Shown: positions 7,432 to 11,830 of the stretch, one piece after another
How positions within the stretch are numbered: the stretch's first letter is position 1
Layout: every line of letters begins with the position of its first letter
IMG/VR virus record: IMGVR_UViG_3300022602_000024
Coordinates: 248,001-312,000 of that record
DNA: 64,000 nucleotides
Direction: 5' to 3' (one strand)
The notes under the pieces: generated by a model
Told to the model about the DNA's origin: nothing
Databases searched by the model: none
The model's input: only the letters and a program-made list of their open reading frames with translations
Made by a program: the position numbers and the translations under genes

Positions 7432-8142
7432 TTATGCCATCAGATAATATAGTTCAACCTTTTTAAGCCACTCGTCAGACCAAAAAGCAAATTCTTCAGG
7501 CTCAACTACAAACTCTTGATACTGCGGAGTTGAGTATGTACCATCTTCTAACTGCTTGGGTTGCACACACATCATGATCACACCTGTGTCGATATTGGTA
7601 CCATGTGTGTCGTTGTGTGCAGCCGCATAAGCAGCCAACTGCATAAAGTAATCGCCAATGTTTTCACGCTTTTTGGGTTTGTTGGTTTGTTTAAAGTCAA
7701 TGATGCTGGGCTGGCCTTTCCACACACCAATGCAATCTGTGGTGCCAGCATACAGTCCACTATAGTAAACAGGAACTTCCACTCCCCAAAACTCATCGAC
7801 ATTACTCAAGCCTTCCATGATAACCTGCGCAGCCATGAACCAGCTGGGGTGTGCATAAGGGTTTGATGGCAAGGGTTTCATGTCATCTTGTAAGATGTAG
7901 GTCTCAAGATAACTGTGCATCCTTGTGCCACGATTAGCGGCTTCAGTGGTAATCTGTTGTGCACGTTCATTCCCAATGGCATTGCGCCAGTTTTGTAAGG
8001 CTTGGCGTGACTCTGCACTTTTAGTCTTGTCTAAGATAGTTGTCACACTGGGTACTTTACTGCCATCAGGAAGACAATAGTGTCGCTTGCCCTCTAAGGT
8101 TGTACGACTAAGAGGTGCATAATTGTATTGTTGTTTTATCAT
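7432..8142 (-). CDS. PD-(D/E)XK exonuclease (Cas4/MGME1-like phage exonuclease)
   Basis: PSVTTIL, RGTRMH, YAGTTD, IIDFKQT and QLAAYA motifs. Confidence 0.88.
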   Translation of the reverse strand: MIKQQYNYAPLSRTTLEGKRHYCLPDGSKVPSVTTILDKTKSAESRQALQNWRNAIGNERAQQITTEAANRGTRMHSYLETYILQDDMKPLPSNPYAHPSWFMAAQVIMEGLSNVDEFWGVEVPVYYSGLYAGTTDCIGVWKGQPSIIDFKQTNKPKKRENIGDYFMQLAAYAAAHNDTHGTNIDTGVIMMCVQPKQLEDGTYSTPQYQEFVVEPEEFAFWSDEWLKKVELYYLMA

Positions 8143-8592
8143 TTATACTTTCTTTATGTCTACGTTGGATTTGGTGAGAAATTGCACACCTGCATCACTG
8201 CGATAGTCTTCGGCATAAAATACACTACGAATACCGCTTTGGAATATGAGTTTAGCACAATCTAAACAAGGAGCATGGGTAATAAACATAGTAGCATCCA
8301 ATCCAGACTCTGTGCTTCTAGCCAGTTTAGCAATGGCATTTGTTTCAGCGTGAAGAACTTCGGGTTTGGTTTTTAACACAGTTCTGTGTATAGCACCTTC
8401 GTATCCTGAATAAAGTTCTACACTTTCATCTTCACAGTTGTTGTCCCATCCTGCAGGCATACCATTGTAGCCAATAGAGATGATTCTGTCGTCTTTGACA
8501 ATGATAGCACCAACATGCAATCTACGTGCTGAACTGAGGTCTGCAAACCTACGTGCAGTATCCATGTATGCTTGAATAAACTTTTCTTTCAA
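8143..8592 (-). CDS. dCMP deaminase
   Basis: [14 protein letters not shown] and PCLDC zinc motifs. Confidence 0.93.
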
Positions 8593-8909
8593 ACTCGAAA
8601 ACTTTCACCGCAACCACAACGGTCACGCTCATTAGGGTTGTTGAACTCAAATCCTTCGTTAAGACCGTTCTTAACATAATCTACTGTTAGACCCTGCAAG
8701 TAAACACAACTTTTTGGATCTACGAATAACTTACAGCCAGCGCAGTCAATGACTTGGTCATCGGGCGCAGGTGTATCTACGTATTCTAACACATAAGCAA
8801 GTCCGCTGCAACCTGTTGTTCTTACACCCAGACGAATTCCTTCGCCATGCCCTCTACGAGCAATAACTTGTTTAACTTTGTTAACGGCTTTTTCGGTTAA
8901 GGTAATCAT
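8589..8909 (-). CDS. iscA: Fe-S cluster assembly A-type carrier IscA
   Basis: TTGCSGLAY and C-terminal CGCGESF. Confidence 0.96.
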
Positions 8910-10228
8910 CGGTTGAAATATAGCGAAACTGGTTTACTAATATTTACGTTTGCTAGTTTATTATTAAAGTTTGATTTATCATCATCAGTCAATAAACTAT
9001 ATAGCTTGGAATTTAAAATAGAAAATTGTGTATTGGTTCTGATATCAAATTCAGCAGTGAAATTTAAATAAAAATTCCATAAATCATCATTGTCATCCCA
9101 TACATCCAATTCATTGATAGTTGCAGAAATAAATCCCTGCATTACCCTTGTTTTGTCTAGGTACCTATCAAATATTGGGTGAGCAGAACACTCTTTAAGT
9201 ATTGCTTTAAGTCCATTCCTATATCTAACTGGTAATGCTTGTATATCTAAGAAATTTGTTCTTTCAACCAAGGTAGTATTTAAAAATGTTATACTTTCAT
9301 TGGCATTAAACCAACCATACCAGTAATCTAGATATTCTTTTATGTAAAATATATTATTAAGACTAAAAACAGGATCTAAAGAAAAATCAAATTGTCTACG
9401 ACTATCAATAGATAAAAAAGATTTTTTAAATTCTAGCATTCGAGTTAGATTATTTTCAATTTTACTAAACTTAACCGGCCATCGAACATATTGATAGTTG
9501 TCGCCCACACTATCAATGCTCATGCCAAACCATATGCTTTTAAATTGCAAAAAGTAGTTTAATAACTCTTCTGACAGATTGACACTTAATGCAGTACTCA
9601 ATTTGATTCCGATACGTGGCGCCAGGCCTTGATCGATGCACCATTTTAATAATTTAAGGGCACCTGGTTGTATTAATGTTTCACCGCCTATTAAAAATAA
9701 ATGAAAAAATTTACAGTCGTTTACTTTATTGATAATATTGGTAGTGATAAAATTCCAATATTCATCTATTTCTGTTATATCTTGCGATAAGAAATCAGAG
9801 TCTGTATTGTTGGTTATCTTAGCAAAGGTAGTACTATCATACGTACTACAACTTCTACAACTCAGGCTGCAAAAGTTACTAAATTTAATTCTAAGTTCTG
9901 TGTTCCTGTTGTAATCAAATGGAAATTCGTTGGCGTTAAGTGCAATTATTGATCGGATACGCTCGGACTGCCCTCCGTGCAATTCTTCATTTTTGCACCT
10001 CCAACATGCAGCAGGAAGATATCCCTGCTCCATAGAACTTTTGATTTCCTTAAAGGGGTCATCTATATGAGAAATTGTAAATTTATTTGTATCAACATTA
10101 CAACAACAAATAATATCCATCTTTGCAGGATTACTACTATGACGTCTTACATCTGTTGTATTGTAAGGAAAAGGGCAGAAACTGGGATTATTTTTAGCCC
10201 ACTCTATTCTTTCATTGACTGTCTGCAT
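8906..10228 (-). CDS. Radical SAM protein with N-terminal twitch/SPASM-like Cys cluster
   Basis: CPFPY...CC...[12 protein letters not shown] and GGET; AT-rich; lies between iscU and iscA. Confidence 0.88.
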
Positions 10229-10605
10229 GTTTCTTTCGATAGTCTTCGACCGCGGCCTTTATGGCATCTTCGGCGAGGATACTGCAATGGATTTTAACAG
10301 GCGGCAAAGCCAACTCATTTGCAATGTCCGAGTTTTTGATTGTTGCAGCTGCATCCAATGTCTTGCCCTTGACCCACTCTGTAACAAGTGAGCTACTCGC
10401 GATAGCTGATCCGCATCCATAGGTTTTAAATCTTGCATCTGTGATAATCCCATCTTTAACTTTGATTTGGAGTCTCATTACATCTCCGTTAACCGCAAGC
10501 TGGGGCACCGACTAAGCCGGTCCCAACTTGCGCATCTCCTTTATCAAAAGTTCCCACATTTCGGGGATTTTCAAAATGATCTATTACATCTTTACTGTAA
10601 GCCAT
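10212..10605 (-). CDS. iscU: Fe-S scaffold IscU interrupted by a 7-nt insertion containing TAA (recoded gene or pseudogene)
   Basis: ATG at 10605 gives MAYSKDVIDHFENPRNVG...GAPACG then TAA (10489-10491). The gene resumes in the +1 frame as GDVMRLQIKV...YGCGSAIASSS...LPPVKIHCSILAEDA. Removing 7 nt gives a 128-aa IscU. Confidence 0.9.
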
Positions 10606-11191
10606 AACTATCTCCTGTTATTGATTCTACTGTCTCTTTAGACTGATAACTATCCCATTTTTTTCTATTCTCTTCACCTAATATATATCTTAGATTTTTC
10701 CTACTACCAATTACTGCTGGAGGTATTCCTAATTCAAATCCTTGTTTATACGGTATAATGTGATCCAATTGGTAATCTGTTTTATGTTTACCAGTTATTT
10801 TAGATATGCCTTCTTTTTTCATAGCATAAACTGTTCTATATGTTGCTCTCCTACACTCCCTTTTATATGCTTCAAATTCATTATCCGTATAGTTTTTTGG
10901 GCGAAGGTTGTTTAATTTACCATCTTTGTTGGGATTATTTTCTAACCATTTTTTTCTTTGGTGTTCATTAGATAATCCTTTATTCCAGCCCCATCCTTTT
11001 TTAAGGCCATCTCTATTTTGTTTTTCCTTTTGTTCTTCACTAAGTGTTATTCCTTTGTTCCAAGGAGTATGCCCGGGGCGGTTATTAGGGTTTTTACAGG
11101 CCTGAGAACAATAATCCAAAAATCGTGGTTTAGTAATAAATGTATCGTTGCAAAAAAGGCACGCCTTTGATATACCATACTTGTTTTTCAT
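10592..11191 (-). CDS. Free-standing HNH-family homing endonuclease
   Basis: CLFC...CSQAC zinc motif, PWNKG/GWNKG NUMOD-like repeats and YQLDHIIP...NLRYI...ENRKK; late promoter at 11197-11202. Confidence 0.82.
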   Translation of the reverse strand: MKNKYGISKACLFCNDTFITKPRFLDYCSQACKNPNNRPGHTPWNKGITLSEEQKEKQNRDGLKKGWGWNKGLSNEHQRKKWLENNPNKDGKLNNLRPKNYTDNEFEAYKRECRRATYRTVYAMKKEGISKITGKHKTDYQLDHIIPYKQGFELGIPPAVIGSRKNLRYILGEENRKKWDSYQSKETVESITGDSYGLQ

Positions 11192-11227
11192 ACAAGTATT
11201 TATGATTGGCGTGCCCGTTTGTGAGTA

Positions 11228-11359
11228 TTATCTTACCGCGGTTGTGTGTTTATGTTTTAAACTCTTTTTAAGAATCTTAAACCAGAATTTCTTTGCTTTT
11301 TCAAGGTTATGCTCAAACTCAGCTCTATTGAGCTTATTAATTAATTTCTGAAGTTTCAT
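11228..11359 (-). CDS. Small basic hypothetical protein (MKLQKLINKLNRAEFEHN...)
   Basis: 43-aa ORF; ATG at 11359 is coupled to the upstream micro-ORF. Confidence 0.55.
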   Translation of the reverse strand: MKLQKLINKLNRAEFEHNLEKAKKFWFKILKKSLKHKHTTAVR

Positions 11360-11462
11360 TTTGTTCTTCCCAAAGTTTAATGGCTTCCCAATAAGAAGCC
11401 CATACACAATTTTCGCAACCACGCCCACAACATGTTGTGGGCTCTTGTGGTTTAGGATACAT
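11337..11462 (-). CDS. 41-aa Cys-rich microprotein of the oxidoreductase-like N-terminal domain type; absent from the ORF track
   Basis: MYPKPQEPTTCCGRGCENCVWASYWEAIKLWEEQNETSEIN; matches the P..P..CCGxGCxxCVW..Y pattern; ATG overlaps the upstream TAA. Confidence 0.8.
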   Translation of the reverse strand: MYPKPQEPTTCCGRGCENCVWASYWEAIKLWEEQNETSEIN

Positions 11463-11782
11463 TAATTGGGAACCGCAACAACTTGCTTAACGCCAGTCTG
11501 TGGATTTACCATCTCTTGCCAGTGATAACCTACAGGTGGTGCTTGTACAACTGTTTGTGGTTGTTGCACAATAACTGGTTGTTGCTCAACAACTACATTA
11601 TTCGGTTGAGCTAGTTCATATCCAACTACACCGCCGATTAGTGCAGGAGCAACCCAACATCCGCCGCAACCATAGCCACCGTGATAATACCCACCGTGCC
11701 ATCCAAATGCACGATATGGGCCATGTGCTGATGCCGCTTGAAAAACAGATATTAACGATAATGCTAATAGTAATTTTTTCAT
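11462..11782 (-). CDS. Secreted or membrane Gly-rich protein
   Basis: Signal peptide MKKLLLALSLISVFQAASA, Gly/His/Tyr-rich segment and WVAPALIGGVVGY; AGGAG Shine-Dalgarno. Confidence 0.75.
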   Translation of the reverse strand: MKKLLLALSLISVFQAASAHGPYRAFGWHGGYYHGGYGCGGCWVAPALIGGVVGYELAQPNNVVVEQQPVIVQQPQTVVQAPPVGYHWQEMVNPQTGVKQVVAVPN

Positions 11783-11801: not shown

Positions 11802-11830
11802 AGTATACAATATTTATGCTAAAAAGTCAA
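11802..11830 (-). promoter_or_regulatory. Sigma70-type promoter with embedded late motif
   Basis: TTGACT-17 nt-TATACT with TAAATA in the spacer. Confidence 0.7.

Follow-up and report, generated by a model that had tools for sequence, protein, structure and literature searches.

The mobA/gene 60 system of phage T4 provides the precedent for a homing endonuclease linked to a translational bypass cassette, and a survey published in 2022 found the gene 60 cassette still to be unique and exclusive to a topoisomerase gene (10.1101/2022.08.31.505936). Until now, gene 60 has been the only natural case of a homing endonuclease that travels with a recoding signal. A second body of work concerns iron-sulfur (Fe-S) metabolism: the idea that phages supply their own Fe-S scaffold and carrier proteins has already been published for marine T4-like phages, and one phage genome carrying an A-type carrier gene was reported to hold 12 radical S-adenosylmethionine (SAM) genes (PMC5332604). 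Here, we analysed a 64,000 nt stretch of DNA (hereafter the window; bases 248001-312000 of the 354,429-bp IMG/VR virus record IMGVR_UViG_3300022602_000024, CheckV completeness 98%) from a freshwater phage genome of 354 kb, in which the Fe-S scaffold gene iscU is interrupted by a 7-nt insert and preceded by an HNH-like gene. We propose, with a probability of roughly 0.55, that the locus carries a homing-endonuclease cassette, the insert of which confers immunity to the endonuclease and is decoded by a 7-nt ribosomal hop. All genes of the locus lie on the minus strand, and the locus was found in at least 19 freshwater studies. A literature search for interrupted phage iscU, for a homing endonuclease at iscU, and for iscU frameshifting or homing in phages found nothing.

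Compared with its nearest relative, L003 (related loci are cited by L numbers), the window has seven extra bases after the codons for Cys37 and Gly38 of IscU, the junction reading TGC GGT TAA C GGA GAT GTA ATG. The initial annotation treated iscU as a single gene and overlooked this interruption; the gene consists of two open reading frames (ORFs) in different frames, the first of 38 aa and ending at the TAA, with the 7-nt insert between them, and gene callers annotate it as two genes. The whole of the PF01592 domain is matched (positions 1-35 and 34-125), but across the two frames, and Cys37, Asp39, Cys63, His105 and Cys106 are all encoded, yet not in one continuous frame. The 3' part, which runs from Gly-Asp39-Val40-Met41 to the end of the gene and contains Cys63, His105 and Cys106, is 97% identical to the intact L003 gene. 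An identical junction was present in eight independent assemblies (JGI, ENA and Logan).

Amongst 81 viral iscU loci collected by protein similarity, 78 were intact, two carried a 7-nt insert with a different stop codon and one ended before the junction. A strict scan for the junction pattern retrieved 33 viral contigs. When the 10 nt between the stop codon and the ATG of Met41 were left free, 43 viral contigs were found, and all 43 read N-GGN-GAY-GTN. With the 4 nt after the Gly38 codon (the take-off codon of the hop proposed below) left free, a total of 61 unique iscU sequences was obtained from viral and metagenome contigs, and the following counts refer to these. Their common layout is a Gly codon, a stop codon in most, one base and a second Gly codon (the landing codon). 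The codon after take-off was TGA in 33, TAA in 15, TAG in seven (55/61 with a stop) and TGT in six sequences of one clade. The Gly codon of the insert varies only in its third base; the third bases of the take-off and landing codons were A/A in 18 sequences, T/A in 26, C/C in 12, T/C in four and T/T in one, and the combinations C/A and A/C never occurred. The spacer base was G in 9 of the 17 sequences with a GGC or GGT landing codon, and in none of the 44 with GGA. In terms of what one tRNA can read, 35/61 codon pairs are identical or differ as U/C, and the remaining 26/61 are GGU to GGA pairs, matched in the first two bases. A scan limited to the GGA-landing form of the junction, in one genome per bacterial or archaeal species, gave six chance matches, none of them in iscU. 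Because 61 unique sequences share the same layout, we conclude from sequence comparison that the insert is not an error, nor does it represent decay. The TGT clade (L156-L160, L175 and L183) reads GGT TGT T GGA, with a sense Cys codon replacing the stop, and both halves of the gene are open in these loci.

The region immediately upstream of the insert is distinguished by a stable RNA hairpin. We folded the 45 nt ending in the Gly38 codon from 29 unique interrupted genes and 76 intact genes. The minimum free energy was -23.4 to -27.9 kcal/mol in 29/29 interrupted genes, whilst intact genes had a mean of -13.4 kcal/mol and a most stable value of -21.6 kcal/mol, with no overlap between the two groups (Mann-Whitney U=0, p=3e-15). 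Correspondingly, 10.6 of the 11 core pairs were filled in interrupted genes, compared with 5.7 of 11 in intact genes. The 3' arm of the hairpin is the invariant Pro-Ala-Cys-Gly coding sequence, and the 5' arm encodes residues 24-27, which are X-Gln/His-Val-Gly in interrupted genes and Asp-Thr, Asp-Ser, Thr-Asp and others in intact genes. An alignment of 21 distinct sequences revealed compensatory changes at four pairs (AU 14, CG 5, UA 2; UA 12, CG 6, GC 2, GU 1; GC 20, AU 1; GC 7, AU 3, CG 3). The covariation score was 0.216, against 0.102 in shuffled alignments, none of 500 of which reached the observed score, and sliding the partners by 1-3 columns gave at most 0.075. No Rfam family covers the region. 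In the TGT clade the 5' hairpin is weaker, at -19.7 kcal/mol.

We hypothesize that the insert is passed over in the following way. A ribosome at the Gly38 codon would meet the stop codon in its A site, where termination would be slow. The strong upstream hairpin would re-form behind the ribosome and pull the mRNA forward, and in some variants the hairpin may pair with the take-off codon itself. The peptidyl-tRNA-Gly would then leave the take-off codon and re-pair with the Gly codon 7 nt downstream, and decoding would resume at Asp39, giving a normal IscU in which the universal PACG-DVM sequence is restored exactly. A hop of this kind would explain the duplicated Gly codon, the tracking of third bases between take-off and landing codons, the exclusion of a spacer G before GGA, the A-site stop and the hairpin. 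A spacer G would be excluded before GGA because GGG would then arise one base early, where tRNA-Gly(UCC) could read it.

The same junction might be read by a programmed +1 frameshift at the Gly-stop pair, which would produce an IscU with two extra residues, X-Gly, between Gly38 and Asp39 (X being Asn, Arg, Asp, Glu, Ser or Val). The A-site stop and a 5' structure favouring forward movement fit such an event, the frame change is +1 modulo 3, and the GGU/GGA class would need no tRNA re-pairing rule. We nevertheless consider a frameshift unlikely, as re-pairing in the +1 position is impossible (GGN-U gives GNU), and the upstream sequence is a hairpin arm with no internal Shine-Dalgarno sequence. 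Frameshifting would also leave unexplained the constant Gly of the second codon, the third-base tracking and the exclusion of a spacer G with GGA landings only, and it would place extra residues, one of them not conserved, inside the invariant Cys37-Gly38-Asp39 cluster-ligand loop. Removal of the 7 nt at the RNA level, by an intron or by editing, was also considered and dismissed; there is no homopolymer for transcriptional slippage, and to our knowledge no bacterial mechanism fits such a removal.

Gene callers annotate two genes here, and homing endonucleases are known to split phage genes (10.1101/2022.08.31.505936), which raises the question of whether iscU functions in pieces. A 38-aa N-terminal fragment and a second polypeptide, initiated at Met41 by termination-reinitiation 10 nt downstream, would then assemble into a working or regulatory IscU without Asp39 and Val40. 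GGA variants do create a GGAG sequence 5 nt before the ATG; GGC-landing variants, however, lack it. The insert Gly codon varies only in its third base in a cassette old enough for a proportion of synonymous differences (pS) of 0.6, and in 43/43 unconstrained loci the changes in the Asp and Val codons are all synonymous. The hairpin ending on the Gly38 codon would be left unexplained. Furthermore, Asp39 of IscU is needed for cluster release, and this residue would be removed. We therefore regard a gene in pieces as very improbable, and favour the hop.

The mobility of the insert is suggested by the gene that precedes it. The HNH-like protein has an N-terminal Cys4 finger and PWNKG repeats, and its residues D143-H144, N166 and N175 do not vary among 10 homologues. 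Free-standing endonuclease genes of T4-like phages share 35-46% identity with its C-terminal part; one of them carries a homing endonuclease annotation and is located between the genes for tail sheath and tail tube. A search of PDB sequences with the HNH-like profile gave no match. The genome contains a single copy of the gene. Homologues with open frames and 58-98% identity lie directly upstream of interrupted iscU and overlap its start. Across the 33 carrier loci, the HNH-like gene is full-length in 17 and reduced to a C-terminal remnant of 33-39 aa in six, and it was next to intact iscU in 0/77 loci. The gene is missing from L003, at a site that is otherwise collinear, and from a lake contig that co-occurs with the window lineage. 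Carriers that lack the HNH-like gene would be expected from short conversion tracts or later gene loss.

The phylogenetic histories of the two parts of iscU differ at the insert. The interrupted state changes twice on the tree of the 5' part and 11 times on that of the 3' part, against approximately 25 changes on either tree when labels were shuffled. Across 11 sister pairs, the 5' parts hardly differ (pS 0.14) and the 3' parts are saturated (pS 0.53); several 5' parts show 0/114 nt differences, and one 3' part shows 45/267. The 5' part is 100% identical in eight carriers with differing 3' parts. The near-identity of 5' parts and saturation of 3' parts in sister pairs therefore indicate a recombination boundary at the insert, which in these sequences is the signature of double-strand-break repair from a nearby cut. 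Thus, the HNH-like gene shows both presence/absence polymorphism at a fixed site and co-conversion of flanking sequence.

Within our best overall explanation, the mobile cassette would comprise the HNH-like gene, the first 38 codons of iscU and the 7-nt insert, placed in the invariant GAPACG/DVM site. In co-infecting relatives, the putative endonuclease would cut intact iscU alleles at the invariant GAPACG-DVM sequence or close to it, repair would copy the cassette up to the insert, and the insert would destroy the target, leaving carriers immune.

A mobile element of this kind need not leave a functional gene. The insert could be a selfish scar that inactivates iscU, with homing outpacing purging and conservation reflecting only recent insertion. 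Judging from the sister pairs, many insertions happened recently. Losing iscU may also cost little, given that the host has an IscU of its own, and a few carriers have further indels near Cys106. The cassette-borne 5' part, however, retains a ratio of nonsynonymous to synonymous differences (pN/pS) of 0.20 at pS 0.61, close to the 0.17 of intact genes, and always retains its start codon. Across the 61 unique sequences, the stop is conserved by way of all three stop codons, the hairpin by way of compensatory change, and both Gly codons are kept. Lineages in which the HNH-like gene has decayed to a remnant or been lost still have both iscU halves open, and no random stops or frameshifts were seen. 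A dead gene, to judge from these patterns, would not be expected to behave in this way, and we rank inactivation as the least likely alternative, one we would be surprised to see confirmed. A preponderance of synonymous differences between the 3' parts of the window and L002 was considered as a sign of post-insertion selection and rejected, the sister pairs showing that 3' parts are recipients' backgrounds.

Several points weigh against a hop-decoded homing cassette. The largest class, 26/61, has a GGU take-off and a GGA landing codon; a standard tRNA-Gly does not read both, so a hop between them would need two-base re-pairing or a tRNA with U34 that reads GGU. The TGT clade has a sense UGU codon where other sequences have a stop. 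The counts of codon combinations are not phylogenetically independent, and there was no RNA sequencing run amongst the runs holding the locus. Instead of recoding, the hairpin might act in the HNH transcript, for example in its stability or processing. The identity of the HNH-like gene by sequence is weak: Pfam HNH families fall below threshold (PF01844 in 6/10 homologues, best E 0.0084), and the AlphaFold2 model is poor (predicted local distance difference test, pLDDT, 65), with Foldseek returning only weak YacG-like zinc-finger rows. Finally, the 3' parts are the backgrounds of recent recipients, and their integrity alone is no proof of function after insertion. As a separate observation that may bear on the GGU-to-GGA class, the genome carries 21 phage tRNA genes, including tRNA-Gly(UCC) and tRNA-Gly(GCC) (G000:C1:313045-313279, outside the window).

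Further indels were observed at a second invariant motif of iscU. One lineage, represented by three assemblies (L103, L201 and L204), carries the 7-nt element together with a 6-nt in-frame insert, TAACTA, at ALPP/VKIHC. This insert adds an in-frame stop and, combined with the native GTTAAG, leaves none of the three frames without a stop; directly after iscU, a Cys-rich ORF begins in this lineage. The diverged, independently assembled L198 and L205 have both lost 1 nt from the A-run of the Val-Lys-Ile codons GTA AAA ATC, just before His105-Cys106, and the reading frame would be regained if tRNA-Lys slipped by -1 on A_AAA. Directly after iscU, L205 encodes on the minus strand a 242-aa ORF (L205:3037-3765) with an N-terminal zinc finger and, by eye, a C-terminal Vsr-like motif, which may be a second kind of homing endonuclease. 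A candidate endonuclease ORF thus directly follows iscU in both lineages for which the downstream DNA was read (L198 left out). If iscU were a general arena for such elements, small frame-breaking indels decoded by recoding would represent a recurrent protection of invariant coding targets by homing endonucleases.

The features of the locus are listed in Table 1. The gene order given by the initial annotation (micro-ORF, HNH-like gene, iscU, radical SAM gene and iscA) was borne out on the minus strand, where it is extended by a promoter-like sequence, two further small ORFs and a dCMP deaminase gene.

Table 1. Features of the interrupted iscU locus, in window coordinates and in order of transcription
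Feature	Position	Strand	Details
Sigma-70-like promoter	11802..11830	-	TTGACT, 17 nt, TATACT; 10/12 consensus matches; consensus match only
106-aa ORF	11462..11782	-	First gene of the putative operon; signal-peptide-like N terminus, Gly/Tyr-rich region
Micro-ORF, 41 aa	11337..11462	-	PF09791 (Oxidored-like); CC-G-x-G-C-x-x-C-V-W motif
Lys-rich ORF, 43 aa	11228..11359	-	Conserved just upstream of iscU (or the HNH gene) in relatives
HNH-like gene, 199 aa	10592..11191	-	Putative HNH-type free-standing homing endonuclease
iscU 5' part, 38 codons	10489..10605	-	Ends GAPACG + stop TAA (10491..10489); PF01592 positions 1-35, E 3.4e-10
RNA hairpin, 39 nt	10494..10532	-	-25.9 kcal/mol; 3' arm ends on first G of the take-off Gly codon
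Candidate recoding core	10485..10494	-	GGT 10494..10492, TAA 10491..10489, C 10488, GGA 10487..10485
iscU 3' part, +1 frame	10212..10487	-	PF01592 positions 34-125, E 3.5e-37
Radical SAM gene, 440 aa	8906..10228	-	Probable N-terminal twitch-domain type; start overlaps iscU end
iscA, A-type Fe-S carrier	8589..8909	-	TIGR02011 155 bits; PF01521 E 5.6e-22
dCMP deaminase gene	8143..8592	-	Last gene of the order listed
236-aa gene	7432..8142	-	PD-(D/E)XK nuclease family PF12705, 22.5 bits vs cut-off 22, E 1.2e-4

The promoter-like sequence is kept in alignments with L002 and L003. Family scans assigned no family to the 106-aa ORF or to the Lys-rich ORF; the former is conserved in relatives at 40-93%, and the latter, which shares 23 nt with the 3' end of the micro-ORF but is read in a different frame, is 58-91% identical in L003, L036, L047, L054, L083 and L113. 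The 236-aa gene comes after the Fe-S genes in nearly all relatives, and no single matched stretch of it passes the PF12705 cut-off alone. We interpret the locus, within the same overall explanation, as one operon whose conserved core is the IscU and IscA pair.

The iscU-iscA pair is conserved in more than 100 related viral contigs, and the two genes are adjacent or overlapping in most of approximately 110 related loci. IscA passes the TIGR02011 equivalog cut-off (150.6 bits), and its translation contains GCSG and CGCG motifs. The initial annotation remarked on a radical SAM gene between iscU and iscA; this arrangement holds in the window lineage and in L003 only, and not in most of the related loci. 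The radical SAM gene has a CX3CX2C motif (CSLSCRSC) and scores just under the cut-offs of NF033640 (168.4 versus 170 bits) and PF04055 (24.5 versus 29.5 bits). Its GC content is 32%, similar to the HNH-like gene (33%), with a window mean of 40% and 45% for iscU. The best overall explanation takes this low-GC, twitch-type gene to be a later addition to the Fe-S core. A homologous twitch radical SAM gene is found after iscA in L032, L042, L062, L093 and L116, and L062 also has a 172-aa ORF between interrupted iscU and iscA (L062:4233-4751), which from its translation alone we read as a peptide deformylase.

Profile scans of the whole genome found 17 PF04055 (radical SAM) matches, of which 11 exceeded the cut-off, along with a single iscU and two genes of the iscA type; a cysteine desulfurase was not found. 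The second IscA-type carrier gene (G000:C1:175425-175727, PF01521 79.6 bits) is distant from the iscU locus, and five consecutive radical SAM matches on the plus strand, with frames of ~406-466 aa, form a tandem cluster at G000:C1:67339-72936; both lie outside the window. Given the conserved pair, the 17 radical SAM matches, the second IscA and the lack of a cysteine desulfurase, it is reasonable to suppose that the scaffold and carrier serve phage Fe-S enzymes, and the idea that the phage provides them for its many radical SAM enzymes is supported. The pair probably assists the radical SAM and other Fe-S enzymes of the phage together with the cysteine desulfurase of the host. The Fe-S module is real, but of an already known kind. 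As in the phages described previously (PMC5332604), iscU and an A-type carrier gene occur in large phages rich in radical SAM genes; the present loci belong to freshwater jumbo phages, and the interruption of iscU and its link to a putative homing endonuclease are undescribed in that work. As annotation pipelines split the interrupted iscU in two, phage Fe-S auxiliary genes are miscounted.

The initial annotation had also assigned to the Fe-S module a 41-aa micro-ORF with a CCGRGCENCVW motif. The ORF itself is real, and the oxidoreductase-like domain predicted for it was confirmed by a PF09791 match of 47.9 bits (cut-off 24, E 1e-12), which was also recovered by the genome scan. Its start codon shares bases with the stop codon of the gene before it (TAATG), and the same ORF appears in JGI and ENA gene calls for 12 independent contigs. 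A word-index protein search with the micro-ORF matched only itself, and relatives were therefore collected with a large profile search. In 52 homologues, C11, G15, C16 and C19 are invariant, and P5, P8, C12, G13, V20 and W21 are at least 90% conserved. The AlphaFold2 model consists of a loop (residues 1-19) and a helix (residues 20-39) with a pLDDT of 80, and has no fold match in the PDB. The nearest relatives, with 59-71% identity, are other phage micro-proteins, one overlapping the end of a thioredoxin gene and another near a peroxiredoxin gene, and the ESM Atlas contains an all-viral cluster of 72 such proteins. On this sequence evidence, the micro-ORF is a genuine small protein rich in cysteine, and its family turns up repeatedly in phages. 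A perfect 20-nt palindrome lies within it (11423-11442, 8-bp stem and 4-nt loop), in which the codons for Pro-Thr-Thr form the reverse complement of those for Cys-Cys-Gly in the motif.

Membership of the micro-ORF in the Fe-S module did not withstand comparison with relatives. The ORF is a 101-nt insert (11360..11460) found only in the window lineage, and its DNA is 100% identical in 10 contigs; because all copies are identical, there is no sign of selection on it. In L003, which is otherwise collinear and has flanking genes 91% identical, a clean indel of ~100 nt accounts for the lack of the micro-ORF, and the upstream gene is followed directly by the Lys-rich ORF. A contig from two lake runs, with a depth of 19-26, lacks both 11360..11460 and the HNH gene, and the window-like form there has a depth of ~5. 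No ORF with the CC-x-x-GC-x-x-C pattern was found in ~120 related iscU loci outside the window lineage. At this locus the micro-ORF is thus not conserved across relatives, an outcome that the initial annotation had itself named as refuting its reading. It appears to be a recent add-on, linked to the Fe-S genes only by its position in one lineage; a conserved link to them was not found.

It is conceivable that the micro-ORF is nonetheless a small metal- or cluster-binding helper of the phage IscU and IscA that matures radical SAM enzymes. It shares their operon, its four invariant or nearly invariant Cys residues include a CX3CX2C spacing, its phage relatives lie beside thiol-redox genes, and absence from relatives leaves a local Fe-S role possible. 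Only one PF09791 homologue has been solved, an accessory subunit of complex I from the fungus Chaetomium thermophilum that occupies the NDUFV3 position on the Fe-S/flavin module; no metal is reported for it, and the word zinc is absent from the paper (PMC9699679). A literature search for PF09791, Oxidored-like or DUF5522 found nothing. The contexts of bacterial relatives are unrelated to Fe-S assembly, and this, together with the ~120 iscU-iscA loci and the co-occurring variant that lack the ORF and the absence of a reported metal, makes the helper role quite unlikely. The micro-ORF should not be counted in the Fe-S module without biochemical evidence. Like the eukaryotic PF09791 proteins (human OXLD1; Ct-NDUFV3, PDB 7zm7 chain o), it has a helix after the CC-G-x-G-C-x-x-C-V-W motif; the phage protein comprises no more than the 41-aa domain, whereas the eukaryotic proteins are longer and mitochondrial.

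Returning to the proposed hop over the iscU insert, we speculate, at slightly less than even odds, that the insert is a second, independently evolved minimal bypass cassette that spread as an endonuclease immunity device, and that iscU is a general arena for such elements. If true, a second family, with a different gene, a far shorter gap and a different covarying stimulatory structure, would show the strategy to be general, and would offer a minimal recoding system of ~50 nt with 61 natural variants from which take-off and landing rules could be derived.

Amongst known recoding events, short stop-hopping and release factor 2 (RF2) +1 frameshifting resemble the proposed decoding of the iscU junction in the pause at an A-site stop, the small forward shift and the frame change of +1 modulo 3. 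Laboratory stop-hops are inefficient and not conserved, and RF2 frameshifting relies on a slippery CUU-U with a Shine-Dalgarno sequence upstream, neither of which is present in iscU (for a review, see PMC5009743).

The likeness to T4 mobA/gene 60 extends further. In both, a free-standing endonuclease gene (in iscU a putative one, HNH-like by sequence) lies just upstream of the target and a short 5' coding stretch travels with it, and an insert at an invariant Gly-coding site of an essential-type gene disrupts, or in iscU would disrupt, the nuclease target. Both have a Gly take-off codon, a stop (a sense codon in one iscU clade) and a Gly landing codon, with a gap that contains no competing cognate triplet, and in both the endonuclease, or putative endonuclease, has been lost in some lineages whilst the insert stays. 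The systems differ in that the target is iscU instead of a topoisomerase subunit gene, the gap is 7 nt instead of 50, and iscU is not split by the endonuclease ORF. The iscU gap lacks a take-off stem-loop and a mini-Shine-Dalgarno sequence, and has instead a covarying, strongly conserved hairpin on the 5' side of the take-off codon, whereas conservation was reported to be lacking for the 5' stem-loop in gene 60 (10.1101/2022.08.31.505936). No sequence relation between the two cassettes was seen or expected. By analogy, the iscU cassette appears to work like the gene 60 system without being a member of it.

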